Positions 1,150-60,354 are shown, counted from the first letter of the stretch. The stretch is 64,000 nucleotides of DNA from IMGVR_UViG_3300030329_004647:1-64000; one strand, 5' to 3'. The notes: generated by a model from the letters alone, not told the origin. Translations and numbers: made by a program.

Positions 1150-1160
1150 ATGCCTTTTGG

Positions 1161-1192
1161 TTTGGTAAAATGAAAAGATTTATTTATCTTTG
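1161..1192 (+). promoter_or_regulatory. Bacteroidota-type -33/-7 promoter
   Basis: TTTG (1161-1164), 20-nt spacer, TATCTTTG (1185-1192), then TAGT-ATG at 1197. Confidence 0.75.
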
Positions 1193-1196
1193 TAGT

Positions 1197-2619: not shown

Positions 2620-2622
2620 GAT

Positions 2623-4009: not shown

Positions 4010-4017
4010 AAAAGTGT

Positions 4018-4025
4018 TATATTTG
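4018..4025 (+). promoter_or_regulatory. Bacteroidota-type -7 promoter element
   Basis: TATATTTG-TAGT-ATG(4030). Confidence 0.7.
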
Positions 4026-4029
4026 TAGT

Positions 4030-5322: not shown

Positions 5323-5325
5323 ACT

Positions 5326-18847: not shown

Positions 18848-20386
18848 ATGAAGGGATTAGATAAAATATTATTAGAAGGTAGGGTTGAAGATGCTAAGAA
18901 CTTACTGAACAAAACTTATGACGACATGGATTACGTCGAAGATATTGTTAGTGACTTTGTAGATGGAGACCCATCAGGTAATAACAAATACTTAATGTGG
19001 ATGGCAAAAGCTGTACAGGAGGAATATATGAATATAACCGATATTATAGAGTTGGTTACAGACTATCATAAACTTTTACCCAAAATCACCAATGCTTTAG
19101 CGATAAAAGTATTCGGTGCAGAGGCAGACTCAAACGCGATAGTTTCACCCAAAAGTATAGACTCCTACAAAACAGTAGAAGATTTATATAAAATAGTTGA
19201 TGCCGCGAAACAACTAGAAAGTAGAAAAGAAGTAGCGACCCAAGCAAAATCAGGAGCTAATAAAATATATGAAGATGAAAGATGGTTAGTGGTCAGACCA
19301 GACACTAGAGATGCATCCTGTTATTATGGTGCAGGCACAAAATGGTGTACCGCTATGAAAAATGCTGAACATTTTGATAACTACAATAAAAAAGGAAGAC
19401 TTTATTATTTGATTGATAAAAGTAGAGACCTAGGAAGATATTATAAAGTAGCTTTATACAAAGAGTTCGGTGCGGGGGGAAGAGATGAGTATTGGAATGT
19501 GGGTGAATGGTATGATGAATTAGATGATAGACTAACTAGTGATATGTTAGAGGTAATAGTAGCTTTACTACCTGAAAAGTTAGGTTCCCGTATTCTGCAA
19601 GACTTTAGAAAAGAGGAGGAAGAAAACGTACTATCAAGACCAACAGCACAAGAATTTGGTAAGAAATTTATAACATGGGTTGGAAATAAATACCCAGATG
19701 GGGACTTAATAACGAGTTTAAGTGGTCCATGGGCATTACAAGCATTTGTTCATGAAGGTGAGGAACCTTATATCTCACTGTCCGCAAGAAAATATGAGGG
19801 ATATGTTAATGTGGCTATTTTTGATGATGCTAATCCAGATGAAATAGTTGTAGATTTAAATGTTGAAGCATCTGCACATGAAAGAGAGAATTACTTTGAA
19901 ATGTCCGAGAGCGTAAGATACGGTACCCCTGAATTTGAGAGTAAATTTTGGAGATTCGACCTCAATGACGAGTTTACCGAAAGGAATTTTGAAACGTTCT
20001 ATACTCAGTTAATATATTGGTGGATTAAAAATAAAATTTTAAATAGTGATAAGGTAATAGAAAGAGTGGATTTAGATGAAGTATACTGGCAACAAGGAGG
20101 ACATAGTGGACGAAGTTTAAGATTTCATTATCCACCTCGAAAAGGAACAATGACACAATTATTTACAGATTATGTAATTAATAATCCAGGAAGAACAAGA
20201 CAACAATTTTATCAAGACGTTCTCAAAAAAAATCATACACCAGGTCATAATACTACATTTTTTGGTGGAATAATATCTTCAGGTATTGTAAGAGGAGAAA
20301 GAGGTCCTGGGAGAGGAAGAGGAATGCAATTCTACAAAGGACCTAACTACGATGCGTGGACTCAAGGGAAATTAAAAAGAGTATAG
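18848..20386 (+). CDS. paralogue of 17058 with different C-terminus
   Basis: MKGLDKILLE|G; DPSGNNKYLMW; DASCYYGAGTKWC..YYLIDK..YKVAL. Confidence 0.8.
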   Translation: MKGLDKILLEGRVEDAKNLLNKTYDDMDYVEDIVSDFVDGDPSGNNKYLMWMAKAVQEEYMNITDIIELVTDYHKLLPKITNALAIKVFGAEADSNAIVSPKSIDSYKTVEDLYKIVDAAKQLESRKEVATQAKSGANKIYEDERWLVVRPDTRDASCYYGAGTKWCTAMKNAEHFDNYNKKGRLYYLIDKSRDLGRYYKVALYKEFGAGGRDEYWNVGEWYDELDDRLTSDMLEVIVALLPEKLGSRILQDFRKEEEENVLSRPTAQEFGKKFITWVGNKYPDGDLITSLSGPWALQAFVHEGEEPYISLSARKYEGYVNVAIFDDANPDEIVVDLNVEASAHERENYFEMSESVRYGTPEFESKFWRFDLNDEFTERNFETFYTQLIYWWIKNKILNSDKVIERVDLDEVYWQQGGHSGRSLRFHYPPRKGTMTQLFTDYVINNPGRTRQQFYQDVLKKNHTPGHNTTFFGGIISSGIVRGERGPGRGRGMQFYKGPNYDAWTQGKLKRV

Positions 20387-26045: not shown

Positions 26046-29000
26046 ATGCGAAATTTTCTATTAATTATATTATGTTTTATATCGTTTGGAGTTGTAGCAC
26101 AGAACGATTCGTGGTTAAACCTACAAATCCAATTTGATAACTATCCTGAAGAATTAGACTGGAAATTATTTCAATTAGACACTTTAGCACCGAACAATAT
26201 TCTTGTCGCAGAGGGCGGACCTTACTACTCAACACCAAACCAACATTTACTTAATGTTTTTATACCTAACTTACATTCTAATGAAACTTACATATTAGAA
26301 GTCCATGACTCATTTGGGGACGGGTTAAGTTGGCCTAATAATGGGTATGTTTATTTGTCTAATATTTGTACGGACACCATATCATATGTGGAGGGAGACT
26401 TTGGTCCTTTTTTTACAGACACATTAACTGTTTCACCATGTAATTCCCCACCATTAGGTTGTCCAGATACATTAGCACTTAACTACGATTCTCTTGCGCA
26501 ATACACAGACATGAGTGTATGTACTTATCCTCCTTGTACTTCAGGTTTAGACACTCTATATGTTGAACCTATATGTGATAATGGGGTTTCAAAATTATAC
26601 TGGCAGTGGTCAGACCAAACAGATACAAATCCTAATTGTGGGATTATCGGTTATTATAGAGGAACAGACCTAAATAACCTCCCTTTTTATCCTTGGCCAA
26701 GTAACTGGCCCCAAGGAGGATTAACAACAACTATTAACCAAACATCACAAGGACAAATGCATTATTTTTATGCGATGTTAGGTGATTCTACTTTAACTGA
26801 CACTCTATCCATAATGCCTATACAATGCATATTAGGATGTACCGACCCTACAGCGATGAATTATAATCCATGGGCAAATGAAGATGACGGTAACTGTCAA
26901 AGCGCACAAGGAAGTTGTAATTACGGAGAAACATGTGTGAGAGTAATAGTAACACCAGATTCTTATGGAGAAGAAACTTATTGGTCACTAACCGATACTA
27001 TTACAGGAACCGTATTAGGTTCTGTGAATCCTGGTTTCTACTCAACACCAGGAGTTCCAGTAACCACTAATGTATGTGCACCTGAAAATTCAGTATTAGA
27101 ATTTACATTAAACGACCAATATGGAGACGGTATGTGTGGAACTTGTTGGGGTGGAATAGATGGTTCGGTGTTAGTAGAAGCTTGTGGTGATACTATAGCA
27201 CACATTGGACCTCCTACACCTATGGATTTTGGAAGTGATACAACGTTTGTTGCGGTTCCAGCACCAGTGTGTACAACAACAGGACCTACAGTAGGTTGTA
27301 TGGACCCAGGTTATGTCGAATACCTCCCAACAGCAACACAACAAAATCCAGGAGATTGTGTAACACCCGTTCAGTTGGGTTGTGTTGACCCAATGGCTTT
27401 TAATTATGACTCCACAGCCAATCAACAACTTATAACACCTAGCTGTACTTATACGTTAAGGTTATTAGATGGTGCTGGTGATGGATGGTTCGGTTCTTGG
27501 ATAGGAATCACACAAGGAGATTCTATTATTGGTGATTTTACTATGACACAAGGAGACACTCTAGACATTCCAATAGTATTAGACGCAATAAAACCAGCAA
27601 AAATATATTTCTTTACACTAGGAAATTCAGTATCAACAGCTAGTCAATGTGGTGTTCAACTAATAAACCCAATGGGACAAGTTACATTTTACGCTGGTTC
27701 TAATCCATGGACAGACCCTATTATTCCATTTCCTTTTATATACACCACAATTCAAGATTGTGGAAACAGTTGTGTACCTACAATTCCAGGATGTATGGAT
27801 TCTACCGCATACAATTATAATCCAGGAGCAAATGTACCAGATACAGTGTTTCCGTGTTTTTACAATCCAGGGTGTATAAGTCCTGCTTATTTAGAATACC
27901 ATACTTATTTAGATTCTGTTGGTGTTGCTCCAGATTTTCTGGACCCATTTTCTTGTCAGAACCTTGCAATTTTTGGTTGTATGGACTCAACTCAATTTAA
28001 TTACGACCAATATGCTACTGTTAATTGGACTTCCGCGACCGATTCATCAGACCCGTGTGTCCCTATGATATATGGTTGTACAGACGCCACAGCTTTAAAT
28101 TATGACCCATTGGCTAATACAGAAAATTATACGTGTATACTACCAATATATGGGTGTACGGATTCAACAGCTTTTAATTTTAACCCATTAGCGAATACAA
28201 ATAATGGAACTTGTATTGCTGTAATAGAAGGGTGTACTGACCCTACAGCTATGAATTATAATCCTAACGCTAATACAGATGATTTTAGTTGTATAGCTTA
28301 CATTTACGGTTGTACCGACTCCACGATGTGGAATTATAATCCATTAGCAAACACAGATAACGGAACCTGTGAACCTTTTGTTTATGGTTGTACGGATGTT
28401 ATAGCAGCTAACTTTGACCCATTAGCAAACACAAATAACAATACATGTTATTATAATCCAGGTTGTACCGACCCACTTTATGTAGAATTTTATAATCAAG
28501 GATTTACCGCTGACTTTGACGATGGTAGTTGTTTGACCCTAGTTGTATATGGTTGTACCGATAACACTATGTTTAATTATGACCCAACCGCAAATGTAGA
28601 TAATGGTAGTTGTGAACCTTTTGTGTATGGGTGTATAGACTCTACTATGTTTAACTATGACCCATTAGCTAACACGGATAATGGTACGTGTGTACCTTTT
28701 ATTTACGGGTGTATGGACGCCACAATGTTTAATTACGACCCATTAGCCAATACAAATCAAGTGAGTGAAACAGATATCTCCAACCCATGTATACCAATTA
28801 TATATGGATGTACCGACTCAACAGCATTTAATTATGACCCTTATGCAAATACAGATAACGGAACTTGTGAAGCAGTGGTATACGGATGTACAGATGAATA
28901 CGATTTTCCAGCATACCTAGATTCAACTTATATAAATTATTTACCAGGATTTTCAACGGTTACCACTTACAATGTTGATGTCACAGCAAATACAGACGAC

Positions 29001-29417
29001 GGGAGTTGTCTATATTATGATGAAAATAGTGTAACAGGACCAGGTACACCTTATTGGTTAAATGATTCATGTTACGCTTGGGTAGTATATGATGTTGACC
29101 CATACTGTATGACAAATCAATGGGATGCTTTTTGTCAATCACAATATGATTATTGTGAATTTGGAACACCAATTGGATTAAATGAAATGACACGTGACCA
29201 AGTTTTGATTTTTCCTAATCCAACTAATGACTTAGTAACTATTAGGTCTAAAGAATCAGTAGATGTAAATATTTATGACTTCTTAGGTAATTTAATATTT
29301 GAATTAAAATCAATACAAGAAGAAAAGGTGGACCTGCGACCTTATTCTTCCGGTATTTATAATATACAACTTACTTACAAAGGTATAATTATAAATCATA
29401 AAGTAGTTAAACAATGA
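26046..29417 (+). CDS. T9SS-secreted Cys-repeat protein
   Basis: Sec signal peptide; about 18 GCxDxxAxNYxPxA..C repeats; C-terminal IFPNPTN..IYDFLGN..SGIYNI..KVVKQ sorting domain. Confidence 0.88.
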   Translation: MRNFLLIILCFISFGVVAQNDSWLNLQIQFDNYPEELDWKLFQLDTLAPNNILVAEGGPYYSTPNQHLLNVFIPNLHSNETYILEVHDSFGDGLSWPNNGYVYLSNICTDTISYVEGDFGPFFTDTLTVSPCNSPPLGCPDTLALNYDSLAQYTDMSVCTYPPCTSGLDTLYVEPICDNGVSKLYWQWSDQTDTNPNCGIIGYYRGTDLNNLPFYPWPSNWPQGGLTTTINQTSQGQMHYFYAMLGDSTLTDTLSIMPIQCILGCTDPTAMNYNPWANEDDGNCQSAQGSCNYGETCVRVIVTPDSYGEETYWSLTDTITGTVLGSVNPGFYSTPGVPVTTNVCAPENSVLEFTLNDQYGDGMCGTCWGGIDGSVLVEACGDTIAHIGPPTPMDFGSDTTFVAVPAPVCTTTGPTVGCMDPGYVEYLPTATQQNPGDCVTPVQLGCVDPMAFNYDSTANQQLITPSCTYTLRLLDGAGDGWFGSWIGITQGDSIIGDFTMTQGDTLDIPIVLDAIKPAKIYFFTLGNSVSTASQCGVQLINPMGQVTFYAGSNPWTDPIIPFPFIYTTIQDCGNSCVPTIPGCMDSTAYNYNPGANVPDTVFPCFYNPGCISPAYLEYHTYLDSVGVAPDFLDPFSCQNLAIFGCMDSTQFNYDQYATVNWTSATDSSDPCVPMIYGCTDATALNYDPLANTENYTCILPIYGCTDSTAFNFNPLANTNNGTCIAVIEGCTDPTAMNYNPNANTDDFSCIAYIYGCTDSTMWNYNPLANTDNGTCEPFVYGCTDVIAANFDPLANTNNNTCYYNPGCTDPLYVEFYNQGFTADFDDGSCLTLVVYGCTDNTMFNYDPTANVDNGSCEPFVYGCIDSTMFNYDPLANTDNGTCVPFIYGCMDATMFNYDPLANTNQVSETDISNPCIPIIYGCTDSTAFNYDPYANTDNGTCEAVVYGCTDEYDFPAYLDSTYINYLPGFSTVTTYNVDVTANTDDGSCLYYDENSVTGPGTPYWLNDSCYAWVVYDVDPYCMTNQWDAFCQSQYDYCEFGTPIGLNEMTRDQVLIFPNPTNDLVTIRSKESVDVNIYDFLGNLIFELKSIQEEKVDLRPYSSGIYNIQLTYKGIIINHKVVKQ

Positions 29418-30016
29418 GACACATAAACACATTTGTAAAAGCTAACCTCACAGTAGTTTACTTAGGAATATTATTAATATTTTTTGCACTGATGTTAACT
29501 GCTTGTGAAAAAGACCCAATAGAACCCTATAATCCTCCTGAGGCTATTAATCCAGATGAAATAAAAGGCAATTGGGAAATAACTAACTTTTATTTATTAG
29601 AGGAAGGGTTTAGAATTGATTTATCTGCGTGGGTAGTATATGTAAATGATTCTGTAGCAGATATAGGTACTATAATCTTTAATGACGAAGGAAACGCAAA
29701 TTTTGATTTGATATATGGTACCAGAGCAGAAGGTTATGACTCCCAAATGAGATGGGGAGATAACTTTAATTCCGCTTTACAAGACAGTTCTACTTTAGGT
29801 TGGAACTGGAGAGCTGAAAAACCTTTGTGTAACACCACTGAGTATAATTATGATTATAACCCAGCACAATATTTTTTAGGAATGAACTTAGAAGATTGGA
29901 CTACAACTTATAAAACAGAAAATAAATGGATAATTGAAAATACAAGACATTATAATGATGAATTAGAATTGACGGGAGAACACTTCCAGTACCGTCGTTT
30001 AACTTTAGAAAGATAA
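29414..30016 (+). CDS. lipoprotein, lipocalin-like
   Basis: lipobox LTA|C EKD; IKGNWEIT motif. Confidence 0.75.
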   Translation: MRHINTFVKANLTVVYLGILLIFFALMLTACEKDPIEPYNPPEAINPDEIKGNWEITNFYLLEEGFRIDLSAWVVYVNDSVADIGTIIFNDEGNANFDLIYGTRAEGYDSQMRWGDNFNSALQDSSTLGWNWRAEKPLCNTTEYNYDYNPAQYFLGMNLEDWTTTYKTENKWIIENTRHYNDELELTGEHFQYRRLTLER

Positions 30017-30020
30017 ATTT

Positions 30021-30407
30021 ATGACAACTACAAAAACACAAGGATTTTTACAAAAAATTGACCCACAAATGTGGTTAACTTTAATAGGCTTTGTATTCAC
30101 CCTAGGACTTATTTATGGAGAGTTTCAACAAATGAAAAATCAAATACAAATATTTGAAGAAAAACAAAAACTTTTTGATGAAGATTTTGAGAATGAAACC
30201 AAAATGGTACTTGAAAAATTTGAAACATTAGAAGAAAAACTACAACTTGAAATTGAAACGGTAGAACAAAGATTAGATAAAAAGATTAAAACAATAAATA
30301 CTCTAGAAGATAAAGTATTTGATATTACAAAAGAAATAGATGTTGAGTTTAAGAAAATAGAAATGCAAATAAAAAATTTAGGAGGCCATGATATAACTAA
30401 AGAATAA
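30021..30407 (+). CDS. membrane-anchored coiled-coil protein
   Basis: TM WLTLIGFVFTLGLIY then heptads. Confidence 0.7.
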   Translation: MTTTKTQGFLQKIDPQMWLTLIGFVFTLGLIYGEFQQMKNQIQIFEEKQKLFDEDFENETKMVLEKFETLEEKLQLEIETVEQRLDKKIKTINTLEDKVFDITKEIDVEFKKIEMQIKNLGGHDITKE

Positions 30408-30408
30408 T

Positions 30409-31521
30409 ATGAAAAATATACTTTTAATATTAACTCTATTACCACTTCTTTCTTTTGGACAAACAGACTCACTTAATTTACAACTTAAACAGGATTGGTT
30501 TAAAACCAACGTATTTGATGGGCTAGAGATTTATTTAGCGGGTAGTTATGGTAGACCTAATGATTTTTCTGACCAAACACTATTAGATGATTATGGATTT
30601 ACTATAGGTTTTAAGAAAAAAGCTAGTGAACTGTGTATAACTTGTCCAAAAAATGAATTTGGTAGAAAAGATGAAGAATTAAAAGCAGATGAAGATAAAG
30701 AATCATATGCTTTTAATAAACAAGGTTTAGAGTATAGAATTACCTGGAGTTATTTTAGAGACGATAATAAACCCTTTAAAGAAGACAGACAGTCTGTTAG
30801 ATACACTAAATTATTTAAAAAATGGGGTGTATGGGCTGAAGTAGACCATAGAAATACTATTTTTGATGATATTTCAGAATCAGGGTCCAATCAAGAATAT
30901 GTAAAAGGAGGTATAAGATTATTATTTAGAGCAACAGATTGGTTAAATATTACTGGTGGGGTAAATGCTAGAACAAACCCATTCGTATCATATACTAATG
31001 AGTTTATTAATTGGTATGAGGGAGCTTCTTGGGATACTGAGTCGTCTGCACAAAACGTATTTTATGATTTTAATGGTGATGGTAGTTGGGAAGATACAGA
31101 ATTAGTAGGTACTTACACAGAAATATTAGACCCTGTGTTAAATGAACCTTATGTTACAAATGCATATAATGCAAAAAAAGAAATTTGGGTTGCATCATCA
31201 TCACCTGTAATAGGTTTAGATATTCTTACCGAATCAAGCATCTACTTTTTTAATTTATTTGTTAACATTTATCCTTACCCTTATGATGTCATCACACCTG
31301 AAGTTGAATATGTTTACTCTGGTAATGACGTGGAATTAAAAGCATTTGGTATGGAAGCTGATTGGGCTCCTACTGAATCAATTACAGAATTTGATGCTGG
31401 GTTAGTTATAGGTTTAAAACTTGGTAAAAACTTTTCCGCTGAATTAAACGGAGAAATATCTAATTACTATGGAGTCTATAACTACAGGACTCAAATTGGA
31501 TTAAAATACAAATTAAAGTAA
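30409..31521 (+). CDS. putative outer-membrane beta-barrel protein
   Basis: signal peptide MKNILLILTLLPLLSFG; alternating beta-strand pattern; C-terminal YRTQIGLKYKLK. Confidence 0.65.
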   Translation: MKNILLILTLLPLLSFGQTDSLNLQLKQDWFKTNVFDGLEIYLAGSYGRPNDFSDQTLLDDYGFTIGFKKKASELCITCPKNEFGRKDEELKADEDKESYAFNKQGLEYRITWSYFRDDNKPFKEDRQSVRYTKLFKKWGVWAEVDHRNTIFDDISESGSNQEYVKGGIRLLFRATDWLNITGGVNARTNPFVSYTNEFINWYEGASWDTESSAQNVFYDFNGDGSWEDTELVGTYTEILDPVLNEPYVTNAYNAKKEIWVASSSPVIGLDILTESSIYFFNLFVNIYPYPYDVITPEVEYVYSGNDVELKAFGMEADWAPTESITEFDAGLVIGLKLGKNFSAELNGEISNYYGVYNYRTQIGLKYKLK

Positions 31522-31522
31522 A

Positions 31523-33928
31523 ATGCAAATCAACAAGTATCCCACCGCGACCATCTTTGGTGTATATATTCTATTTCTATTATTTCTACTATTCAACTCA
31601 ACACAATTAGTAGCTCAAACTATAACCATACAAGACCAACAAACCTTAGAACCCATCCCCTTTGCGAATATTTCGTCCTACCAGTTGTTAATAACAGAAA
31701 CAGCTAATGGGTTTGTTACAGATTCAGTTAGGGTTGGTACAACAACAGACATCAATGGTCATGCTGATATTTCAGACTGGTCCGATGATATGTTACTACA
31801 TATATCATTTCTTGGTTATGAAAAAAGAAAGATAACTAAAGGAGAGATATTAAAAAAGAATAATGTTATTTTCTTAAGAGAGACCGCACAGTTTTTAGAA
31901 CAAGTGGTAATATCTGCTAGTAAGTTTAGAGAAAAAAGAGAAGATGTGGCTTATTCTATAGAATCTTTAGATAGAAAAACCATAGAAAACGCAAATGTAA
32001 CACAAACTCCAGACCTTCTTACAAAAACTAATGGAGTAACAATTCAAAAGTCACAATTAGGTGGAGGTTCCCCAATCATAAGAGGATTTGAAGCTAATAG
32101 AGTTCTATTAGTAGTTGATGGTGTTAGAATGAATAACGCGATTTATCGTTCTGGTCACTTACAAAATTCTTTAACAATTGACCCTAATGCAGTAGAAATA
32201 GTGGAAGTGGTATTTGGTCCTTCATCCACGATTTATGGGAGTGATGCGTTAGGAGGGGTAATACATTTTTATACACGTAAACCACAATTTAGTAAGAATG
32301 ATAAAATATTTACCCAAACAAAGGTTGTGAGTCGTATGTCTCTTGCTGATGAAGGAATGTCTACTCATATAGATTATAACATAGGAGGTAAAAATGTTGC
32401 TAATTTTACCAGTTTAACATATACTAGTTTTGGGGATTTGAGGATGGGTCAAAACAGAAATCATGGGTATGATGATTGGGGGTTGGCAAACTATTACATT
32501 AACGAGAACGACGAAATGGTGGAAAATGAGAATTCTCATATACAAGTAGGTACAGGTTATGAACAATATGATTTACTTAATAATCTTACATGGAAAGCAA
32601 CTCCAGAAATAATTTTAAGATGGAACACCCAACTATCCACTACTACAAATATACCTAGATATGATAACCTACAAGATTATAATGATGGTGAGTTAAAATG
32701 GAGTGAATGGCACTACGGACCTCAGACTAGATTTTTTACTTCACTACAAGGTAATGTATATAAACAAACTAAATTTTATGATAATTTTAGAGTAACATCC
32801 GCATATCAATTCATTAAAGAGGATAGAATAACAAGAAAGTATCAATCAGAGGATTATAATAACACATATGTAGATGTACACGTATCCAGTATTAATTTTG
32901 ACCTTTCAAAGAAAAAACTTTTATACGGGTTTGAGTTTGTTAATAACCAAGTAATATCTACCTCAACGGCAGGAACTCAACCAAGATATCCTTCAGGTGG
33001 AAGTGACTTAACATCAATCGCAGCTTATACAACATATAAACATCACTTTTCAGAAAAATTCTTAATTGCGGGTGGGTTAAGATATTCTTCCATATTTGCA
33101 AACATGTCTTTTAACAATGATGACCCTGTATTTGTTACTGATGAAATAAATGCAACAAACGGCGCACTTACGGGAAATATAAATAGTGTTTGGAAACCAG
33201 GGAATGGGTGGAAATTCGATGTTGTTGGAAGTACAGGTTTTAGAAGTCCAAACATTGATGACTACGGTAAAGTCTTTGTTAAAAGAGGTGACATGGTTAT
33301 CCCTAATCCAGACCTTACACCAGAATATGCTTATAATACAGAAGGTACTTTGACTAAAACTTGGTCCAACATATCCTTAGCTGGAACAATATATAATACA
33401 TGGTTAAGAGATGCTATCACCAAACAAGATTTAGGGTATAGTCAAATACATGAAGACGAAGAAGTAAATGTGCAAACCCTGATGAATACTGAGGAAGCCT
33501 ATGTTAGAGGTATTTCTTTAGTTGGGAAATACGAACCAGTAGAAGAACTTTATTTTGAATCCTCATTTAACCTACAAAAAGGATATGATATATCAAATGA
33601 TGAACCTCTTGGTCATATTCCACCCGCATATGGTAAATTTTTAACTAGATTTAAACTTAAAAAATTTGAAGGAAGGGTTTGGTACGATTACGCTTTACCT
33701 AAATTATTAGAGAATTCTAATGGGGCGACGGACAATATTGATTTAGCGACTGATGAAGGTTGGCCTTTTTGGTATACACTTAATTTAAGTATGACCTATA
33801 ATATAAACAAAGGTCTTACAATGCAAATAGGGTTGGAAAATTTAATGGACCTACACTATAGAACATTCGCTTCTGGTCTTTCAGCACCAGGAAGAAATGT
33901 GATAATAAAAGCACAATATAAATTTTAA
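31523..33928 (+). CDS. TonB-dependent receptor (Bacteroidota type, N-terminal CarboxypepD_reg-like domain)
   Basis: EQVVISAS, GGGSPIIRGFEANRVLLVVDGVRMNN, FGPSSTIYGSDALGGVI, FRSPNIDD, C-terminal PGRNVIIKAQYKF. Confidence 0.95.
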   Translation: MQINKYPTATIFGVYILFLLFLLFNSTQLVAQTITIQDQQTLEPIPFANISSYQLLITETANGFVTDSVRVGTTTDINGHADISDWSDDMLLHISFLGYEKRKITKGEILKKNNVIFLRETAQFLEQVVISASKFREKREDVAYSIESLDRKTIENANVTQTPDLLTKTNGVTIQKSQLGGGSPIIRGFEANRVLLVVDGVRMNNAIYRSGHLQNSLTIDPNAVEIVEVVFGPSSTIYGSDALGGVIHFYTRKPQFSKNDKIFTQTKVVSRMSLADEGMSTHIDYNIGGKNVANFTSLTYTSFGDLRMGQNRNHGYDDWGLANYYINENDEMVENENSHIQVGTGYEQYDLLNNLTWKATPEIILRWNTQLSTTTNIPRYDNLQDYNDGELKWSEWHYGPQTRFFTSLQGNVYKQTKFYDNFRVTSAYQFIKEDRITRKYQSEDYNNTYVDVHVSSINFDLSKKKLLYGFEFVNNQVISTSTAGTQPRYPSGGSDLTSIAAYTTYKHHFSEKFLIAGGLRYSSIFANMSFNNDDPVFVTDEINATNGALTGNINSVWKPGNGWKFDVVGSTGFRSPNIDDYGKVFVKRGDMVIPNPDLTPEYAYNTEGTLTKTWSNISLAGTIYNTWLRDAITKQDLGYSQIHEDEEVNVQTLMNTEEAYVRGISLVGKYEPVEELYFESSFNLQKGYDISNDEPLGHIPPAYGKFLTRFKLKKFEGRVWYDYALPKLLENSNGATDNIDLATDEGWPFWYTLNLSMTYNINKGLTMQIGLENLMDLHYRTFASGLSAPGRNVIIKAQYKF

Positions 33929-41861: not shown

Positions 41862-44800
41862 ATGAAATCCAAAACTACATACTATACAGACGACTGGAAG
41901 GAGAAACTCGTAGATGACTTCTATACTGAATATTACCCCAAACCAAGACTAGAACAATCTATTTTTAAGTATTTAGATAATTTATATTATATAAGTGAGG
42001 ACGAAATATTTGGTACTATCTATAGAAAATCTGACGATTACTTTATGGGTAAAACTCAAATCACCGATGATTTACAAAATTTATTTGGTTTAACCTTACC
42101 TAATCTTTTAAAGATAGGTCCAGGGGAAGATGATTATATTGAACCCGCTAGAAATCCAATCCCTAGAAGGGTTTTAAATAATTGGATGAAAAGTAAACGA
42201 AATACAGAAAGACTTCAGAAAGAATCAATAGTAAAAGATAGTATTGTTTGTGATAATTGTGGATGGAACTGGAAAATAAAAGATGGTGGTGATGATTTAT
42301 ATATTTGTCACAAATGTAATCATAATAACACCCCTTTAAATGAACATAAAGAATCTAAAATAAATCCACAGTTAATGATAGGTGATGAAATCACTGTAGT
42401 TGATGTTGATGAAAGTTTTGGTACACTCCATACACCAGAACGATATAAAGATTATGTGGTTATAGGTAGACGACACAGACAACCAGAAAATTGGGAAGGA
42501 CCCGATGCGGATACTAGTTATTATGTGATAGAACCATTAAGTGGTTATAGTGATAAGGAAACATTAGGTCGTATGTTATCTGGTGGTGGAAGAAAAAGAG
42601 AAGAACAACTCCACCCAACAGATAAATGGATGTTAAGAAAAGGATTTTTAAGAGGAGAACATTTAACTGAACAAAAATCACTAAAAAATAATTTACTTAA
42701 TGTAGAATTAGAAGAAGGTGATAAAATACTTGTAGTGAGTAGAAAGGAGACACCAGCAGGATATAGAGAACCCTTACCAGACCACGACGTAGAGTTATTC
42801 ACCACCTATGTGGTTATAGAGAAAAGATATAGTGGGCATAAAGCAAAACACCCTTACCATTATTTCTTATTACCAGAGGAACAGTATGAGATTTTTATAA
42901 ACGACCCATATGATGATAGTGTAGATAAATCGGTAAAATCATTATTCCCTTGGATACACGATTGGATTTTAGATAATGAAGATATAATGACTGAACATAA
43001 AGAATCAAAAATTAATCCTGAGTTAGAAGTAGATGACATCATAAGAATAATTGATGTTGATGGGGAACATGATAGAAAACCAGAAAAATTTAAGTTATAT
43101 AGAGTAGCGTATAAGGGAAATAAACCAATTGGACATGGGTACTCGTGGGAAACAGAACCTAGAATATGGTATGATATAGTACCAACAGACCTTGACTACG
43201 ATACAGTAAGAACTTTTGATTCAAGGGGCACACCAATGTATCACAGTAAAAGTTTATATCCTGGAGATACATGGATTAAAATGGATGAAGTTATTAGTGA
43301 ACAGAGTGCTGATAGTCCAGGTGACAACATAAGTGATGATGATGAAGAATACGTAGACAATACACCGTTTACCAAAAAAGAAATTTTAATCTTAAATCAA
43401 TTACACAAAAAATTAACTAAAGATGAATTACACTCTCTTGTTATTGATACACCAGGAAAAGGAAGTTCGGATTACTACCAACACCAAGCTAAGTTTTGGG
43501 AAGTTATGAAATTATTTGGGATGGATTATAAAAATGACGCTCCCTACCAGACTAGAATTTCACAGTACGCTAAATGGGCATTAGACAATTGGACTCCAGA
43601 AGGTGATTATGGAAAGATTGGAAATCCCCTAAAAGTACCACTTAAATGGTACAATGTATCGAGAGAGGAAACAGGTACTCAAGTAGAGTATAAATCTGGT
43701 GAGGCAGAGGTACTAGGGTTTGATTATGATAATGCAGAAGAGAGAGCTAATAATGAATTTTGGGAATGGGGTGGAGAAATGGAACCATTTGATTATGGAG
43801 ACTATGAGGCACACGATAGTGAAATTACAGGTATTGACTTTGTTAGATTGGATGAAGCGAAAAGAATAGTGAAGGTGTTAAATGAACAAGATGAATCAGG
43901 TTTAGAAAGACAAATAATTCAAGCGGAAACTGAAGACTTCCAAGAACTTATGTATGAGGTTTTGAGAAGAGTTAGACAGATTCCGTTGGATAAAACAGTA
44001 TCACCTAGAAGAATTAAAGAAATTTTAAGTGATGACGGAGTAAGTTTCGACCTCTATCAAGGAGCAGACCTTAATGAGGAAATACATAGAGAATACAATA
44101 GAGTAAGATTTTATGAATATAGTCAACAACTTTTAAAAGCTGCACATTCAAAAGGAGTAAGAGGTCACTATTTTGAAGGTTTATTAGCAGGATTATTTAA
44201 TGGTGAAGTTGTTAGTCCGATGGAAGGGGAAATGACCGACCCAAAAGAAGATGTCCTTATTAATGGTATTAACTACTCAGCTAAATTGGTACGTGCTCAA
44301 GATAAAAAATGGGGAACATCCAGTTTACTAGGGGGATTTAAAAAAGCAATAATTCAAAGACTAGTGGATAGAGACATCGAAGTACCTGATGAATTATTGA
44401 AACGAAAGTTAGAGGTTAAAACTCTTAATGAGTTAGTAGTTTTATTTCCCGAAGGAGACCCAGATAGAGAGTCTTTTCAAGTTAGACATATGGAATTGTT
44501 TTTAAAAGATTCATCTGTAGACAGAAAGTATAAAGAGATAACAATGAACTATGCTTTTACCAGTAAATCAGAAGAGGAAATAGGTATAGAATTACATTGG
44601 ATTTTTGGATTAATATGGGGTACCAATGAGACTTTTGAAGGAGAAGAATTACCTACTACTAATTTAAAATATTATTTAATGGATACTCCTAGTTTAATAG
44701 ATGGAATACTCGATGGTGATATTCATTTTACAAAAGGTAGAAACATTAGGGAAATTAGAATATCGGAAAAAAGCATGATAGACTCAAATGGGGCTAGTGA

Positions 44801-45815
44801 ACACTCAATCATATTTCCAGTGATTACAAGACAAGACCTTAAAAATTTATTATATGACGAAAAGTCAGAAGAAATGGTTTATAAGGTAATGGGTATATTT
44901 AAAGACTTCAGACCAGGTACTGAAAAATATATGCATCATAAAATAGCTGATGTAATCGCTGATAATCCACAAGAGTTTATTAAAAGGTTACAAGATTTAT
45001 TTCCAGAAAAGAAAATCACAAAAGAAACTTTTTCCAGAATTATAGAAAATATAGATACTACAGAAATAAAATATGCTATAGACCAACAATATAGAACTGA
45101 ACCTGATTTAAAATCTGATATTATACAATCAATACTTGGAGACGAAGAAACAACTGAGGATACTTTTTATTTAAACCCACAAGGTGTAGAATTAAACGTA
45201 CCACCAATCAAAATAGCACAAAAGGTTAGTGATATTAATGATTATGGTGAGATTAATTTTGAAATGCAGGGTGGAAACGGTATCGCTTATTTTACAGATA
45301 AAGACTTAGTAATAAAACTTACAACTGATGAATCTGAATATCACACAGCGACTAAACTACTAGGAACAGAAAATAAACATATTGCTAATGTGTTAGAAAG
45401 TGCAAAAATTAACACTTCACATATAAAAGGTGACCTTTTTATGATAGTAACAGAAGCTTTACATATGACCAAAGAGATGGAAGAAATATGGCACAAATGC
45501 TGTTGTTCAGAAACAGACCCAATTTATATAGATTATACTCAAGAACCAGCTAGACCTATATCACCAGTATCAGAACATGCAATATGTCAACCTATATATG
45601 ATAATATTATATCAATAATTAGTGATTTAACGTCACATGGAATAACTTGGAGTGATATTGGGATAGATAATCTAGGTATTAAAAATGGAAAACTAGCCTT
45701 AATAGACTTAGGAGATAGTCAAGGTGGGTCACTTAAAGGTAAAATACTAACATTAGAAAGGAGAAATGATTTAATACAAAGAGAACTTTTATATGAAGAT
45801 GTATTCCCTAACTAA
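41862..45815 (+). CDS. polyprotein 1: Zn ribbon, 3 SH3-like repeats, acidic domain, nuclease-like and protein-kinase-like domains
   Basis: modules delimited by LNE|H, LTE|Q, MTE|H, ISE|Q, LNE|Q, IIE|N; kinase motifs GGNGIAY, VIK, DIGIDN, IDLG. Confidence 0.8.
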   Translation: MKSKTTYYTDDWKEKLVDDFYTEYYPKPRLEQSIFKYLDNLYYISEDEIFGTIYRKSDDYFMGKTQITDDLQNLFGLTLPNLLKIGPGEDDYIEPARNPIPRRVLNNWMKSKRNTERLQKESIVKDSIVCDNCGWNWKIKDGGDDLYICHKCNHNNTPLNEHKESKINPQLMIGDEITVVDVDESFGTLHTPERYKDYVVIGRRHRQPENWEGPDADTSYYVIEPLSGYSDKETLGRMLSGGGRKREEQLHPTDKWMLRKGFLRGEHLTEQKSLKNNLLNVELEEGDKILVVSRKETPAGYREPLPDHDVELFTTYVVIEKRYSGHKAKHPYHYFLLPEEQYEIFINDPYDDSVDKSVKSLFPWIHDWILDNEDIMTEHKESKINPELEVDDIIRIIDVDGEHDRKPEKFKLYRVAYKGNKPIGHGYSWETEPRIWYDIVPTDLDYDTVRTFDSRGTPMYHSKSLYPGDTWIKMDEVISEQSADSPGDNISDDDEEYVDNTPFTKKEILILNQLHKKLTKDELHSLVIDTPGKGSSDYYQHQAKFWEVMKLFGMDYKNDAPYQTRISQYAKWALDNWTPEGDYGKIGNPLKVPLKWYNVSREETGTQVEYKSGEAEVLGFDYDNAEERANNEFWEWGGEMEPFDYGDYEAHDSEITGIDFVRLDEAKRIVKVLNEQDESGLERQIIQAETEDFQELMYEVLRRVRQIPLDKTVSPRRIKEILSDDGVSFDLYQGADLNEEIHREYNRVRFYEYSQQLLKAAHSKGVRGHYFEGLLAGLFNGEVVSPMEGEMTDPKEDVLINGINYSAKLVRAQDKKWGTSSLLGGFKKAIIQRLVDRDIEVPDELLKRKLEVKTLNELVVLFPEGDPDRESFQVRHMELFLKDSSVDRKYKEITMNYAFTSKSEEEIGIELHWIFGLIWGTNETFEGEELPTTNLKYYLMDTPSLIDGILDGDIHFTKGRNIREIRISEKSMIDSNGASEHSIIFPVITRQDLKNLLYDEKSEEMVYKVMGIFKDFRPGTEKYMHHKIADVIADNPQEFIKRLQDLFPEKKITKETFSRIIENIDTTEIKYAIDQQYRTEPDLKSDIIQSILGDEETTEDTFYLNPQGVELNVPPIKIAQKVSDINDYGEINFEMQGGNGIAYFTDKDLVIKLTTDESEYHTATKLLGTENKHIANVLESAKINTSHIKGDLFMIVTEALHMTKEMEEIWHKCCCSETDPIYIDYTQEPARPISPVSEHAICQPIYDNIISIISDLTSHGITWSDIGIDNLGIKNGKLALIDLGDSQGGSLKGKILTLERRNDLIQRELLYEDVFPN

Positions 45816-56415: not shown

Positions 56416-57417
56416 ATGAGACAATCAAAAATACTACAAATTATACGGGAAGAAATAGACCACCAAGAAAACGGACTTATTTTTGAGGGAGTAAATTCTT
56501 ATACCCCTACAAAGGGATATAGGAATAACCAACTTATAGAAGTTTATGATAGTAAGGGTAAACAACTTATTAATGAAGGAATGATTGATACTGTACAAAG
56601 TGTTTTAGATTATGCGGGATTTATTCCTGGTATTGGAGACCTTTTAGATGGGGTAAACGCTTTAATTTATATGATAAGAAAAAAGTATTTTTTAGGTGTA
56701 ACTTCTTTAGTTGCGGTTATTCCAGCTGTAGGAAGTGTGATAGCAGCACCATTTAAAGCAGCACACAAATTATTAGGTAAGGCAGCGAATAAATTAGGGA
56801 GTATTTTAGGTAAAATGGTTTCTAATGGTAAGAGTGCAGCTTCAGAATTGATAAAATTGTTACAAAGTGGTGGAACCAAACTTAAAGGGGTGACTGATAA
56901 AATTTATAAAGCTATTTCTAAAAATGTATCTAAAATAAACTCATTCTTAGATAAAGTCATACCAACACTAAATAATAAAATAAAAGATTATTCATGGGGT
57001 TATTTTGCATTACCAAATGCATTTGTTAAATCAGGAAACGCTATCATTAAACAAATGAAACAATTTTTTACACAATTAGGTAAACCAGCGTCCTATCAAG
57101 TTAGTAAAAAAGTAGCAAAGAGTGAGGTAAAGAAAGAACTTAAACCAGAAGAAAAAAAGACTAATTATAAAAACTATATAGCAAAATTAAGTAAAAAATA
57201 CAATGTACTCCGATATGGTAAAGAAAATGATTGGGGACAAAATAGATATGCGTTTTATAATAAAGATTGGCATTTTATTTGTCCAGATGGTTCTACGGGA
57301 AAAGCTTGTACCACTAGTAAAACCAAAGAGTTTACTCATGGTATTGTAAAACTCGCTGACGATAATAAAGCTAAGATAGCTCTAAAAAATTATATGGACG
57401 CTAAAAAAACAGCTTAA
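56416..57417 (+). CDS. leader-bearing protein with pre-toxin TG-like domain
   Basis: INE|GMIDTVQSVLDYAGFIPGIGDLLDGVNALIY...LVAVIPAVG; basic C-terminus. Confidence 0.7.
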   Translation: MRQSKILQIIREEIDHQENGLIFEGVNSYTPTKGYRNNQLIEVYDSKGKQLINEGMIDTVQSVLDYAGFIPGIGDLLDGVNALIYMIRKKYFLGVTSLVAVIPAVGSVIAAPFKAAHKLLGKAANKLGSILGKMVSNGKSAASELIKLLQSGGTKLKGVTDKIYKAISKNVSKINSFLDKVIPTLNNKIKDYSWGYFALPNAFVKSGNAIIKQMKQFFTQLGKPASYQVSKKVAKSEVKKELKPEEKKTNYKNYIAKLSKKYNVLRYGKENDWGQNRYAFYNKDWHFICPDGSTGKACTTSKTKEFTHGIVKLADDNKAKIALKNYMDAKKTA

Positions 57418-58512
57418 ATGAAAGATATAATTAAAAAAATATTAAGAGAACAAATTTCTACTGAATTAGAACAAGACCTTAATGCTTTTCATCCAGATTT
57501 ATTTGAATTAGAAGAAGGTAAAAAGAAGAAGAAAAAAAAGAAAAAAGCTAAGAGAGACGCTTGTTATCATAAAGTTAAAAGTAGATATAAGGTTTGGCCT
57601 TCAGCTTATGCTTCAGGAGCTCTTGTTAAATGTAGAAAGGTTGGAGCAAAAAATTGGGGTAATAGTACAAAAGAAGGGGTTAAGTTAGATGAAGGAATGT
57701 ATGGTATGTCAGAACCATTAGATTATGTTGTAGTAGATATGAGAAATTTAAGACCACTCATGATGAACTATGGAGATGGTCAATATTATGAAAAATGGCA
57801 AACAGAATTAGACGCTCAAAAATCAGCAGACGACTTAAATAGAGCTTACCAAAAAACATATGGTGCGGTAGAAGGACCCCATGTTGTTATGTATAAATCT
57901 GATTACTTTACTGAAAAAAGAAAAGAAGATATGATGGAGGGTAAGAAGAGAAAGTTAACCAAAAAACCTAGTTCAGAAACAAGTTTAAGAGATTGGTTTG
58001 GTAGAAAAGGTGCTAAAGGAAGTACTGGAGGTTGGGTAGATTGTAACGCACCAGATGGGAAAGGTGGTTATAAATCTTGTGGAAGAAAAGAAGGTGAAAG
58101 TAGAAAAAAATACCCAGCATGTAGACCTACACCAGCTGCATGTAAAAGTAAAGGAAAAGGAAAAAAGTGGGGTAAAAAGAGTAAAAATGAATCTATAACA
58201 GAACAATATGGTAATTTTGTTAGATGGGGTGAGTTAATAACCGAGGCAGAGTATAAAGGTAGAAAAGTAAAACTTAATAAACCAACTAGAGGTGATGTTA
58301 AGAAGTTTAAGGTTTATGTTAAAAACGATAAAGGTAATGTAGTTAAAGTTAACTTTGGTCATGGAGGTACTTCGGCAAAAAAGAGAGGAGAAAAAACAAT
58401 GAGAATTAAAAAAAGTAATCCTGAAAGAAGGAAAGCTTTTAGAGCGAGACATAATTGTGACAACCCAGGACCAAAATGGAAAGCTAGATATTGGTCATGT
58501 AAAGCTTGGTAA
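57418..58512 (+). CDS. leader-bearing fusion of small basic Cys-containing modules
   Basis: MKDIIKKILRE|Q; WPSAYASGALVKC; GGWVDC..KYPACRP; EAEYKGRKVKLNKP..RARHNC..RYWSCKAW. Confidence 0.75.
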   Translation: MKDIIKKILREQISTELEQDLNAFHPDLFELEEGKKKKKKKKKAKRDACYHKVKSRYKVWPSAYASGALVKCRKVGAKNWGNSTKEGVKLDEGMYGMSEPLDYVVVDMRNLRPLMMNYGDGQYYEKWQTELDAQKSADDLNRAYQKTYGAVEGPHVVMYKSDYFTEKRKEDMMEGKKRKLTKKPSSETSLRDWFGRKGAKGSTGGWVDCNAPDGKGGYKSCGRKEGESRKKYPACRPTPAACKSKGKGKKWGKKSKNESITEQYGNFVRWGELITEAEYKGRKVKLNKPTRGDVKKFKVYVKNDKGNVVKVNFGHGGTSAKKRGEKTMRIKKSNPERRKAFRARHNCDNPGPKWKARYWSCKAW

Positions 58513-58514
58513 CT

Positions 58515-59108
58515 ATGAAACTCCTAGATGTGTTATCGGAACAAATAGAAAGTAATTCTAATCAAGTAGAAAAAAGACTTAGAACACTATTCAGTGCAAT
58601 GCAGGACATCAAAGGAATAGACAACGTCGTGGGGTGTATATCATCAGAAAAATCTAGAGAAAATTGTATGGGTCGTCAGGGGTATATTGTAACCCAAACT
58701 GAGGTTTTGTCATTATTAAGATTATTTGGATATAATGCTTTGGATAAGATGAGATTTGACCAATTTGACATGTTTTATTGGTTAGCTACTTGTTTTATAG
58801 CGAACGGTGGTTACGCAAGGACTTTTAGTCAAGGACCTCTAGAGGCAGTTAATTTAGAAATAAATGTGAGAGAAATGCAAGCTGAATATGATGAAGAACG
58901 TATAGAAACAAGAGAGGGATGGGGTGATTTATATGATATGAGTGATGATGAGGATGCTAAACAATATTATTTAGATAATTTTGAGAGTTTAATGACGGAT
59001 AATGAACACCTAGATGATGATTGGGGTGATATAATAGATGTAAGAAACCCACAGGTAGTTGCACATAGAATAATAAAACTCAACCCTGAATGGATAGGAC
59101 TAAAATGA
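58515..59108 (+). CDS. leader-bearing acidic-domain protein (start moved to MKLLDVLSE|Q)
   Basis: LLRLFG...acidic tail resembles the SDTLKLYG family. Confidence 0.7.
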   Translation: MKLLDVLSEQIESNSNQVEKRLRTLFSAMQDIKGIDNVVGCISSEKSRENCMGRQGYIVTQTEVLSLLRLFGYNALDKMRFDQFDMFYWLATCFIANGGYARTFSQGPLEAVNLEINVREMQAEYDEERIETREGWGDLYDMSDDEDAKQYYLDNFESLMTDNEHLDDDWGDIIDVRNPQVVAHRIIKLNPEWIGLK

Positions 59109-59821
59109 AAGATTTAATTAAAAAAATATTAAAAGAAGAATTGTTAACTGAATCTGCGTTTACACAAGAAATTGCTGTAGACCTATGGAAAAATGTTCTT
59201 GCGTATCCACAAAATAGAACTAAAAAAACTTATGATTACTTAGATTATGTTGATGGAGAAACAGCATTTGGTGCTTTACACTGGACTACCAGTGGATTTC
59301 CACAACTCTATGAGATTATGGGTAATACTATAACTAAACATTATTTTGGTAAAACTGTAGAAGAAATGATAGAGTTTAGTAAGAGTGTAAATGGTGAAGA
59401 ATTAGAGTATGAATGGTGGGAAGACGGTATGAACGACTTTATAAATGGACCTTACAACGAATCCGTCCAAAATCAAGCAATCCATGATAAATTCAGTCAA
59501 AAATTTGCTAGGAGTAAATATGGTGGTGTAATAAATAAATGGACAACACTAAGAGAATTTGCTATAGGAATGTCTTTAATTAATTCTGCTCCGGCGTGTT
59601 TTTTAAGAGGAAAACAATATGGGTGGGACGCTGAAGAAATGATGAGAGATTATTGTAAAGGTACTGGAGAGAAAAGTAATATTCCATCTTCTGAAGAATC
59701 CGGCTGTTATAAAACAAGGGGGTGTAGAAGTAGATGTGAAAACATCAATAAATTTTATCCAGCGCCTAGTAAAAGTGGTTATGTCTGGTCTGACGAAGAA
59801 CATGATAAGTATTGTTCATGA
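59105..59821 (+). CDS. leader-bearing protein, possible lysozyme-like fold
   Basis: MKDLIKKILKE|E; DGETAFGALHWT motif; Cys-rich C-terminus. Confidence 0.6.
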   Translation: MKDLIKKILKEELLTESAFTQEIAVDLWKNVLAYPQNRTKKTYDYLDYVDGETAFGALHWTTSGFPQLYEIMGNTITKHYFGKTVEEMIEFSKSVNGEELEYEWWEDGMNDFINGPYNESVQNQAIHDKFSQKFARSKYGGVINKWTTLREFAIGMSLINSAPACFLRGKQYGWDAEEMMRDYCKGTGEKSNIPSSEESGCYKTRGCRSRCENINKFYPAPSKSGYVWSDEEHDKYCS

Positions 59822-60354
59822 GACGGTTAATCCAAAGAATACTCCTAGAAGAAACAACCTCTAAAGTTTTATTAGTTTTCGGTGGTATAAATCAAGCTAC
59901 TCCAGAATGGATGGGGAATCAAATTCCTAGTAGAATTAAAAATCAGTACGATAAAATAATCCTCAAAAGTTATAGAAGTAGAGATTTGTTAGAATCAATA
60001 GACTCTCTTAAAGAAATGAAAAACACCAATATTAGTGTAGTAGGTTTTTCACAAGGAGGTCTCAATACCTACAGATTAGCCAATAGTGGTGTAAAGTTAG
60101 ACTTTCTAGGTTTAATAGACCCATCAGTTAAAAGTGACTGGTCATTAAAAGGATTTCCTTCCGGTCGAAATTCTGTGTTATTCTACAATAATAAAAACTG
60201 GGGTAAACAGTACTATGACAAATACATTGTGTGGAGAAATGAATTAGCGGAAGAGATGAGAAGTAGTGGTATGGAAGTAGTAGAAGAAGATTTAAATCCA
60301 CATATAAATGACCATATGTTATTCCCTAGAGAATTTTTTAATAGGTTTATGTAG
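59818..60354 (+). CDS. leader-bearing alpha/beta hydrolase
   Basis: MRRLIQRILLE|E; nucleophile elbow VVGFSQGG; LIDPS; C-terminal His. Confidence 0.75.
   Translation: MRRLIQRILLEETTSKVLLVFGGINQATPEWMGNQIPSRIKNQYDKIILKSYRSRDLLESIDSLKEMKNTNISVVGFSQGGLNTYRLANSGVKLDFLGLIDPSVKSDWSLKGFPSGRNSVLFYNNKNWGKQYYDKYIVWRNELAEEMRSSGMEVVEEDLNPHINDHMLFPREFFNRFM

Follow-up and report, generated by a model that had tools for sequence, protein, structure and literature searches.

In phage T4, the prohead protease gp21 cleaves after Leu/Ile-X-Glu, and the internal protein IPIII has a 10-residue capsid targeting sequence that is sufficient for encapsidation and whose processing is blocked by an Asp in place of the Glu (PMC9026906). 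The T4 internal proteins IPI, IPII, IPIII and Alt are single-module proteins that lose one leader each. The T4 proteins gp22, gp67 and gp68 are cut by gp21 at many Leu/Ile-X-Glu sites per polypeptide (gp22 has 17 motifs in 269 residues), which leaves scaffold debris, most of which exits the head. In the giant phages phiKZ, 201phi2-1 and SPN3US, head and ejection proteins are also cut several times after Glu, here by S80 proteases (phiKZ gp175, SPN3US gp245) that prefer Ala or Ser at subsite P3 (A-X-E, S/A-X-E); these cuts mostly strip and fragment N-terminal propeptides and leave one mature product (PMC5694885, PMC10052503). The polyvalent proteins of phages and conjugative elements are large, shuffled proteins with 2-15 unrelated conflict or effector domains that are thought to be delivered with the DNA and cut into functional units, and the model for their processing involves an embedded metallopeptidase and no defined junction motif (Iyer, Burroughs, Anand, de Souza and Aravind, 2017; PMC5512222). 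Here we describe P1, a protein of 1317 residues encoded in IMGVR_UViG_3300030329_004647 (232 kb), the first 64 kb of which were analyzed and are referred to as the window. We consider it likely that P1 is a virion-packaged effector polyprotein that is cut at its module junctions by an S77 prohead protease.

P1 has features in common with each of these systems. It shares with the T4 internal proteins and Alt the protease family (S77; MEROPS) and the Ile/Leu-x-Glu grammar (PMC9026906). The leaders are also alike: T4 ipII and ipIII begin with MKTYQEFIAE↓A (an arrow marks a known or predicted cut), the leader genes of the window carry leaders of 9-13 residues, and in both cases the proteins that carry them are small, diverse and fast-evolving and are presumed to be injected. 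Unlike the T4 internal proteins, P1 is a 150-kDa precursor of about seven modules with a site at each junction, and it has leader remnants in its interior and no N-terminal leader of its own. With the polyvalent proteins it shares about seven unrelated modules and mosaic architectures in 100 relatives. In contrast to the model for that class, P1 has a prohead-protease motif at its junctions and contains no HExxH motif or embedded zincin-like metallopeptidase, and Pfam finds no signature polyvalent-protein domain in it. Whereas the phiKZ-type cuts yield one mature product, each P1 fragment is a conserved, shuffled module, and whereas the gp22, gp67 and gp68 fragments are debris, those of P1 are predicted to be folded domains, among them one that is kinase-like and one that is nuclease-like. 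No description of such an arrangement turned up in a full-text literature search for phage polyproteins linked to prohead proteases.

The original prediction, made from the sequence of the window, had described an open reading frame (ORF) of 1.3 kaa that is divided into modules at six Leu/Ile/Met-x-Glu sites, with duplicated module starts and one internal leader-like copy. The ORF is uninterrupted, and all six sites are present in frame (Table 1). A TTG at 41856, six bases 5′ of the ATG, is an alternative start. The duplicated start E↓HKESKINP is visible in the DNA as a repeat (D1) of 71 nt with 75% identity (42341-42411 and 42992-43062), by which the start of SH3-like module 3 duplicates that of module 1. 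The leader-like copy AKRIVKVLNE↓Q is also present, and an additional site, LDE↓A (residues 663-665), lies just before it. The N-terminus of P1 (MKSKTTYYTDDW...) has no leader of the capsid-targeting type; leader-like copies occur only internally, at residues 666-675 and, in degenerate form, at about residues 114-118.

Table 1. Coordinates of P1, its predicted modules and junction sites, and other features discussed in the text. Nucleotides are numbered from the first letter of the window; aa, amino-acid residues.
Feature	Residues	Nucleotides	Strand	Remarks
P1 ORF, candidate polyprotein	1317 aa, counted from ATG	41862..45815 (stop included)	+	ORF list
N-terminal domain	1-117	41862..42212	+	BLAST breakpoints q109-126; helical, low confidence in AlphaFold2
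Leader remnant RLQKE↓SIVKD and putative CxxC...CxxC zinc ribbon	118-161	42213..42344	+	ends LNE↓H
SH3-like beta module 1	162-270	42345..42671	+	ends LTE↓Q; alignment A3; AlphaFold2 block 176-258
SH3-like beta module 2	271-378	42672..42995	+	ends MTE↓H; AlphaFold2 block 288-370
SH3-like beta module 3	379-480	42996..43301	+	ends ISE↓Q; AlphaFold2 block 393-473
Acidic alpha/beta domain	481-665	43302..43856	+	isoelectric point 4.4; ends LDE↓A; AlphaFold2 block 505-663
Internal leader copy AKRIVKVLNE↓Q	666-675	43857..43886	+	pLDDT below 50
Nuclease-like alpha/beta module	676-1062	43887..45047	+	ends IIE↓N; AlphaFold2 block about 715-1005
Protein-kinase-like module	1063-1317	45048..45812	+	ESM Atlas, Foldseek, BFVD
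Site LNE↓H	159-161	42336-42344		in frame in P1
Site LTE↓Q	268-270	42663-42671		in frame in P1
Site MTE↓H	376-378	42987-42995		in frame in P1
Site ISE↓Q	478-480	43293-43301		in frame in P1
Site LNE↓Q	673-675	43878-43886		in frame in P1
Site IIE↓N	1060-1062	45039-45047		in frame in P1
P2, second candidate polyprotein	1787 aa	45839..51202	+	begins 23 nt after P1; same junction grammar
Array of nine leader genes		51752..60354	+	starts 51752, 53336, 54728, 56183, 56416, 57418, 58515, 59105, 59818
Leader-M23 peptidase-PG_binding_1-SLT transglycosylase protein		54728-56170	+	domain search
Three further leader genes		15451-16545, 17058-18845, 18848-20386	-, +, +	leader reading of products
Peptidase_S77 (PF03420)		L223:17996-18697, about 116.6-117.3 kb in window coordinates		flanked by Portal_T4 and Gp23
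ClpP, cellular-type (PF00574, E 5e-60)		12991-13662	-	family search
Host-like outer-membrane cluster		26046-33928		type IX secretion system (T9SS) C-terminal sorting protein (1123 aa), lipoprotein-like ORFs, TonB-dependent receptor (801 aa; Plug and beta-barrel)

A search of 5.8 billion proteins returned the entry of P1 itself and 100 relatives of 736-2254 residues; among cluster members in NCBI, none carries a functional name and a few are called 'hypothetical protein'. The relatives share just subsets of the P1 modules, in differing orders, and have PAP2, DUF192, AAA_33 and SET domains as added partners; some of the modules are also found free-standing. This is the behavior that had been predicted for a modular polyprotein when related loci are compared. 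The BLAST breakpoints of the 100 relatives cluster on P1 at q159-172, 265-279, 376-383, 472-481, 655-675 and 1049-1068, and these clusters coincide with its junction sites.

The SH3-like module, which occurs in many of these contexts, allowed the position of the motif to be examined. From the relatives 117 non-identical module starts were gathered, 109 internal and eight protein-initial. An [IL]xE motif sits 4-8 residues before an NPxL anchor in 103 of the 109 internal starts, with a spacer of exactly 6 in 71 of those starts, as compared to 14% at random positions in the same proteins. In five of the other six, a longer spacer separates the motif from the anchor. At the 103 junctions subsite P3 is Ile in 54, Leu in 48 and Met in 1. 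These junctions thus lack the Ala/Ser/Gly-x-Glu motif of the S80 type and, given the S80 preference for Ala or Ser at this subsite, S80 enzymes do not fit them. The sequence preceding the motif is that of whichever module lies upstream (...DRKTISE, ...FLRGEHLTE, ...DWILDNEDIITE, ...RDKYLKE), so that every module type ends in the motif. In the relatives the motif also closes the acidic domain (F-x-R-[MLV]-D-E↓) and the nuclease-like and kinase-like modules. All eight proteins that start with an SH3-like module read M-x5-NPxL, which places the start codon exactly at subsite P1′.

The motif is preferentially kept at the junctions. The seven junction motifs are retained in 53-96% of divergent aligned contexts, as compared to 12-37% for 11 of the 12 interior copies; the remaining interior copy is retained in 57%, a value that comes from n=7 contexts. 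[LI]xE is depleted within the P1 modules (9 vs 19 expected, z -2.7) and in excess in the non-leader proteins of the window (113 vs 84 expected). Selection against exposed copies in the interior would be expected to produce such a pattern. The extended motif [LIM]xE[QH] is enriched in P1 (5 vs 1.4 expected, P about 0.014).

Structure prediction gave a consistent picture. The whole of P1 was covered by two AlphaFold2 runs with homologous-segment alignments, for residues 1-675 and 676-1317, with mean predicted local distance difference test (pLDDT) scores of 62.8 and 73.5, respectively. Separate folded blocks are predicted: three beta-rich ones, the alpha/beta acidic domain, an alpha/beta block in the nuclease-like module and a block at about residues 1105-1295 (the others are in Table 1). 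Glu161, Glu270, Glu378, Glu480 and Glu675 lie within segments of pLDDT below 50 (154-165, 262-277, 373-382, 476-489 and 666-675, respectively), Glu665 borders the last of these, and Glu1062 is inside the low-confidence segment 1054-1099. Six of the seven junction Glu residues, with the seventh at the edge, are thus in segments of pLDDT below 50, as compared to 3 of the 12 interior ones, two of which adjoin a junction or sit in the C-terminal tail. The hypergeometric P, calculated by hand, is 0.0024 with the edge case and 0.017 without it. Predicted domains straddling the sites would have refuted the reading of P1 as a polyprotein with modules between cut sites; none crosses a site.

A protease of the family whose T4 member cuts after Leu/Ile-X-Glu is encoded in the same genome. 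Walking along the genome by exact-protein look-ups, in which successive loci overlap at 99.9-100% nucleotide identity, led to a T4-type head module at about 111-119.6 kb, with the S77 protease gene about 71 kb downstream of P1. The head genes are in the order terminase, Portal_T4, three small genes, Peptidase_S77, a 473-residue scaffold-like protein and the Gp23 capsid protein, inside whose gene the fetched locus ends. This protease and T4 gp21 share 34% identity (E 1e-23); it retains ELNHP and SSRG-GS and has near its N-terminus an LLIE↓ like that of T4 gp21. The scaffold-like protein contains 20 hydrophobic-x-Glu motifs. The capsid protein begins with MGALLE↓S...VIKE↓D...QLFE↓NQATHLINE↓ATAAD, and its T4 counterpart gp23 has ...SFLTE↓AEIGG at the equivalent position. 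In more distant relatives (L004-L007, one from a 297-kb contig), Portal_T4 (7e-77), Peptidase_S77 (2e-24) and Gp23 (6e-73) form a head cluster directly upstream of a leader gene that joins a zinc ribbon and a P2-like module. The predicted cutting in the head has thus gained a gp21-family protease in the head cluster of the same genome, and the T4 gp21 motif is the junction motif of P1.

The region between P1 and the head module, at about 83-110 kb, contains more leader genes, a 1426-residue ORF, a Clp-type unfoldase (ClpA/B/C-type AAA+, L221:46-2070, about 98.7-100.7 kb), a SprT-like protein and HSP70. The window itself encodes a ClpP, which was considered as the main maturation protease and rejected: it is of the cellular type, a Clp unfoldase is in the genome and a true S77 protease is present.

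Downstream of P1 and P2, each gene of the nine-gene array starts with a short leader in which the first [LIV]xE Glu is at residue 8-12. In all twelve leader genes of the window the hydrophobic-x-Glu ends at residue 9-13, with the consensus MKxLIKKILxE; examples downstream of P1 are MKTLIKKILRE↓T, MKDIIKKILRE↓Q, MKDLIKKILKE↓E and VKNLIKQILKE↓Q. At least 120 stretches in IMG/VR match a degenerate DNA pattern that encodes M-K-x-[LI]-I-K-[KQ]-I-L-[KR]-E, and among these loci and the others fetched there are 237 leader ORFs, whose median length is 160 residues. The large number of leader loci indicates that the system is widespread. No match to gene 53336 was found by tblastn among the INPHARED phages. 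The product of 54728-56170 is likely a particle-borne cell-wall-degrading enzyme, of a type that phages take along in the virion. Nine consecutive Lys residues and basic segments rich in Cys occur in the leader protein of 57418-58512, and its N- and C-terminal parts recur in a polyprotein-like gene beside the capsid gene in L004-L007, another case of module shuffling. Genes 17058 and 18848 are paralogous (595 and 512 residues). The former weakly resembles, with 23% identity from the N-terminus onward, a structural protein of the Pseudomonas jumbo phage PA5oct that was detected by mass spectrometry and whose N-terminus, MKLFE↓VFTLYE↓D, resembles a leader.

Several P1 modules occur elsewhere behind such leaders. 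The zinc ribbon is free-standing in genes of 55 residues (MKYILNHVTYIFE↓K...CDNCGWNW...) in L010 and L011, and it directly follows a canonical leader in L124 (MKSLIKKILRE↓AIVDNKVICDVCGW), L070 and L134; P1 has the remnant RLQKE↓SIVKDSIVCDNCGW at the matching place before its zinc ribbon. The acidic domain is present twice in the leader gene 53336-54706; in P0128, whose sequence starts with MKRIVRLTE↓SDLSRIVRRVL...LNE↓D, it follows a leader as the sole module. The nuclease-like module is N-terminal in P0024, P0012 and P0021 behind MGNIMYKELYE↓Q...AKNIVKMLLE↓Q, and the second of these motifs matches the internal AKRIVKVLNE↓Q of P1, which is also similar to the leader of window gene 56183 (GRIVKRVIME↓Q). 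A leader in the middle of a protein has no obvious role, so the internal remnants argue for fusion of formerly separate leader genes. Fusion had been proposed for the polyprotein as a whole. The sequences argue for it at three junctions, those of the zinc ribbon, the acidic domain and the nuclease-like module; the three SH3-like units look like products of tandem duplication.

The identities proposed for the modules fared unequally. Neither the whole of P1 nor any of its seven pieces gave a hit in Pfam or PHROG other than the weak zinc ribbon (Pfam DZR, E 0.028), none of the modules matches a sequence in Pfam, PHROG or the PDB significantly, profile searches of the PDB that used alignments A1, A3 and A4 gave nothing significant, and tblastn of P1 against the INPHARED phages found no match. 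The kinase-like fold of residues 1063-1317 is supported by structure comparisons: the module scores 0.96 to Pkinase, OspG, YrbL and RIO-type clusters in the ESM Atlas, nearly all of its 50 best Foldseek matches in the PDB are protein kinases (probability about 0.8-1.0, E from 7e-3), and its BFVD matches include phage protein kinases. GGNGIAYF, VIKL, DIGIDN and IDLG, which can be read in it by eye, are candidates for the Gly-rich loop, the beta3 Lys and the catalytic D..N and DxG motifs of a kinase. For the nuclease-like module, in which the block at about residues 715-1005 has pLDDT mostly of 80-94, the ESM Atlas gives free-standing viral clusters of 273-347 residues (0.95) and restriction-endonuclease families (0.85). 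The best BFVD match is a free-standing 293-residue phage protein (E 4e-12), whose pairing with this module is inferred from the aligned length. The PD-(D/E)xK nuclease label is a weak one. So is the SH3-like label of the three beta units, whose models give weak Foldseek matches (E 0.05-0.8) to barrels of the SH3, Tudor, PWWP and eL21 types; the ESM Atlas was uninformative for the first of these units (top score 0.76). As a repeat the unit is clear, since an internal repeat hidden Markov model recovers it with E 1e-14 to 1e-44. The zinc ribbon is assigned from its sequence pattern only. The acidic domain is paralogous to residues 662-828 of P2 (34% identity, E 4e-17). It belongs to a small family of 98 representative clusters (1.84 billion proteins searched), and its position is very variable among the proteins of 38-2340 residues that contain it.

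P2 resembles P1 in its motif statistics, with 7 [LIM]xE[QH] motifs as compared to 1.5 expected. It ends in an AAA_33/zeta-toxin-like kinase (residues 1595-1756), and its hydrophobic central module is common to the gene beside the capsid gene in L004-L007. A second pair of giant ORFs was observed at the P1 relative P0043 (1192 residues with a PAP2 end; L219, a 28,972-bp ENA contig). The ORF upstream of it encodes 2258 residues, starts with the leader MKNKKDNMLQE↓Q and a nuclease-like module, and has 3 nt from its stop to the next start. With tandem giant ORFs at this locus too, the polyprotein pair is a conserved arrangement. No head genes were seen within 10 kb of P0043.

The best reading of the P1 system is T4-style targeting and processing extended to a polyprotein of injected effectors. 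The P1 precursor would be incorporated into the core of the prohead, most probably by means of its N-terminal domain. This domain is N-terminal in every one of about 27 relatives that have it, and it is a candidate prohead-targeting or anchoring domain that may replace the leader. After activation, the protease would cut after each junction Glu and release about seven proteins of 12-45 kDa: the N-terminal domain with the zinc ribbon, three SH3-like proteins, and the acidic, nuclease-like and kinase-like proteins, with predicted masses of about 19, 13, 13, 12, 21.5, 45 and 29 kDa. Residues 666-675 would come off as a 10-residue leader peptide. The fragments would stay with the DNA in the head and then be ejected into the host like the T4 internal proteins. 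Packaging, cleavage, ejection and the effector functions are proposals. It also seems plausible, and in our estimate slightly favored, that P1 exemplifies a combinatorial packaging grammar in a widespread group of aquatic T4-like phages. A gene would read [leader]-module-[IL]xE or module-[IL]xE-module, any small protein could be added as cargo, and the prohead protease would act like a viral polyprotein protease.

Several points weigh against the proposal that P1 is packaged and cut. P1 is rich in Leu, Ile and Glu, and [LIM]xE is a common tripeptide in it; the bare motif is not enriched (19 vs 23.9 ± 4.2 in shuffles). The motif count is therefore uninformative and the case rests on the position of the motif. 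The copies of the SH3-like module are homologous, so that the 103 of 109 starts are not 103 independent events. Subsite P1′ at the SH3-like junctions is His in 60, Gln in 13, Asn in 9 and Ser in 9; the T4 sites that were read have Ala there. The junction between the N-terminal domain and the zinc ribbon has only a degenerate site, LQKE↓S, and the P1 N-terminus has no MKxLIKKILxE leader by which it would enter the prohead. The model of the N-terminal half is modest, and low pLDDT is no proof of a flexible linker, so the predicted structures are supportive, not proof. The cleavage specificity of this S77 enzyme is extrapolated from T4, and we infer packaging and cleavage for an uncultured phage that is known here from its sequence alone.

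Among the alternatives, the one that survives best is that P1 is packaged as an uncleaved multidomain 'polyvalent' protein in which [IL]xE is an inherited structural cap or linker element. It would account for the lack of enrichment of the bare motif, common ancestry of the module copies could partly explain the conservation, and some of the phage polyvalent proteins are packaged without being processed, an example being the N4 virion RNA polymerase (PMC5512222). We regard it as unlikely, as modules of unrelated types (SH3-like, acidic, nuclease-like, kinase-like and zinc ribbon) retain the motif at their ends with varying flanking linkers, and the motif lies in low-confidence segments outside the folded cores and is depleted in the interior of the modules. 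In addition, free-standing forms start exactly after the Glu position, and the motif is the known specificity of the protease family that the phage encodes.

Cleavage by another protease, perhaps after injection, is a still less probable alternative. Embedded metallopeptidases have been proposed to process polyvalent proteins (PMC5512222), and zincin-like HExxH motifs do occur in this system: HEHTH at about residue 1166 of P2 and HEYTH, HELVHH and HEMIHH in relatives. P1 itself has no such domain. The SprT-like protein and the Clp ATPase encoded elsewhere in the genome, the latter with the ClpP of the window, are further candidates, and ClpP homologues lie 0-3 kb from MKxLIKKILKE-leader arrays in 11 of the 120 related loci listed. 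Glu at subsite P1 together with Ile or Leu at subsite P3 is a hallmark of gp21-type enzymes; zincins mainly read subsite P1′, and ClpP is processive, not site-specific. As in T4, the motif recurs in the capsid propeptide and in the scaffold that this phage encodes, which also argues for the S77 protease.

That P1 is a cytoplasmic multidomain enzyme whose linkers resemble protease sites by chance is very improbable. In favor of it, P1 lacks an N-terminal leader and any match to a structural-protein family in Pfam or PHROG, and the window shows no enrichment of the T4 late-promoter consensus (TATAAATA; 21 vs 18 expected). Against it, P1 is grouped with P2 and nine leader genes including the leader-M23-SLT hydrolase, shares modules with leader-bearing genes and has in P2 a neighbor whose relatives adjoin the capsid gene; moreover, unless P1 is exposed to the protease, it is difficult to account for the conserved junctions and the interior depletion.

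If the combinatorial packaging grammar proposed above is real, no polyprotein strategy for effectors injected by tailed dsDNA phages would have been described before it. If P1 is indeed a virion-packaged polyprotein cut by the S77 protease, true polyproteins would join the T4 scheme, in which one leader goes with one protein and one cut, and the polyvalent-protein class would be tied to a specific enzyme that processes it and to a defined cleavage site. The arrangement could explain how many small effectors (kinase-like, nuclease-like and binding modules), each small enough for the tail, are loaded by giant phages in fixed ratios. The junction motif and the leader would provide a searchable rule for the injected cargo of uncultured T4-like phages in metagenomes, and the polyprotein would be a natural template for packaging multiple protein cargos in T4-type capsid vectors.

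The phage itself was assembled at about 280 kb both from a JGI (Joint Genome Institute) sample and from a Tara Oceans run, has a G+C content of about 32%, and has no close cultured relative in INPHARED and other searches. It is most likely an uncultured marine T4-like giant phage. The T9SS sorting domain and the TonB-dependent receptor of the outer-membrane cluster point to a probable host in the Bacteroidota. The 10 kb upstream of the window were found to contain metabolic genes only. Auxiliary metabolic genes are numerous in this genome, and those of the window include a SAM-synthetase-like (S-adenosylmethionine) gene, PPK2, UvdE, an ATP-dependent DNA ligase and a CCA-adding enzyme (13676-14734 on the minus strand, and 1-6024). 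Flanking loci (L015, L016) encode glutamine synthetase, a phosphoenolpyruvate-utilising enzyme, thioredoxin/glutaredoxin and a PAP2 phosphatase.

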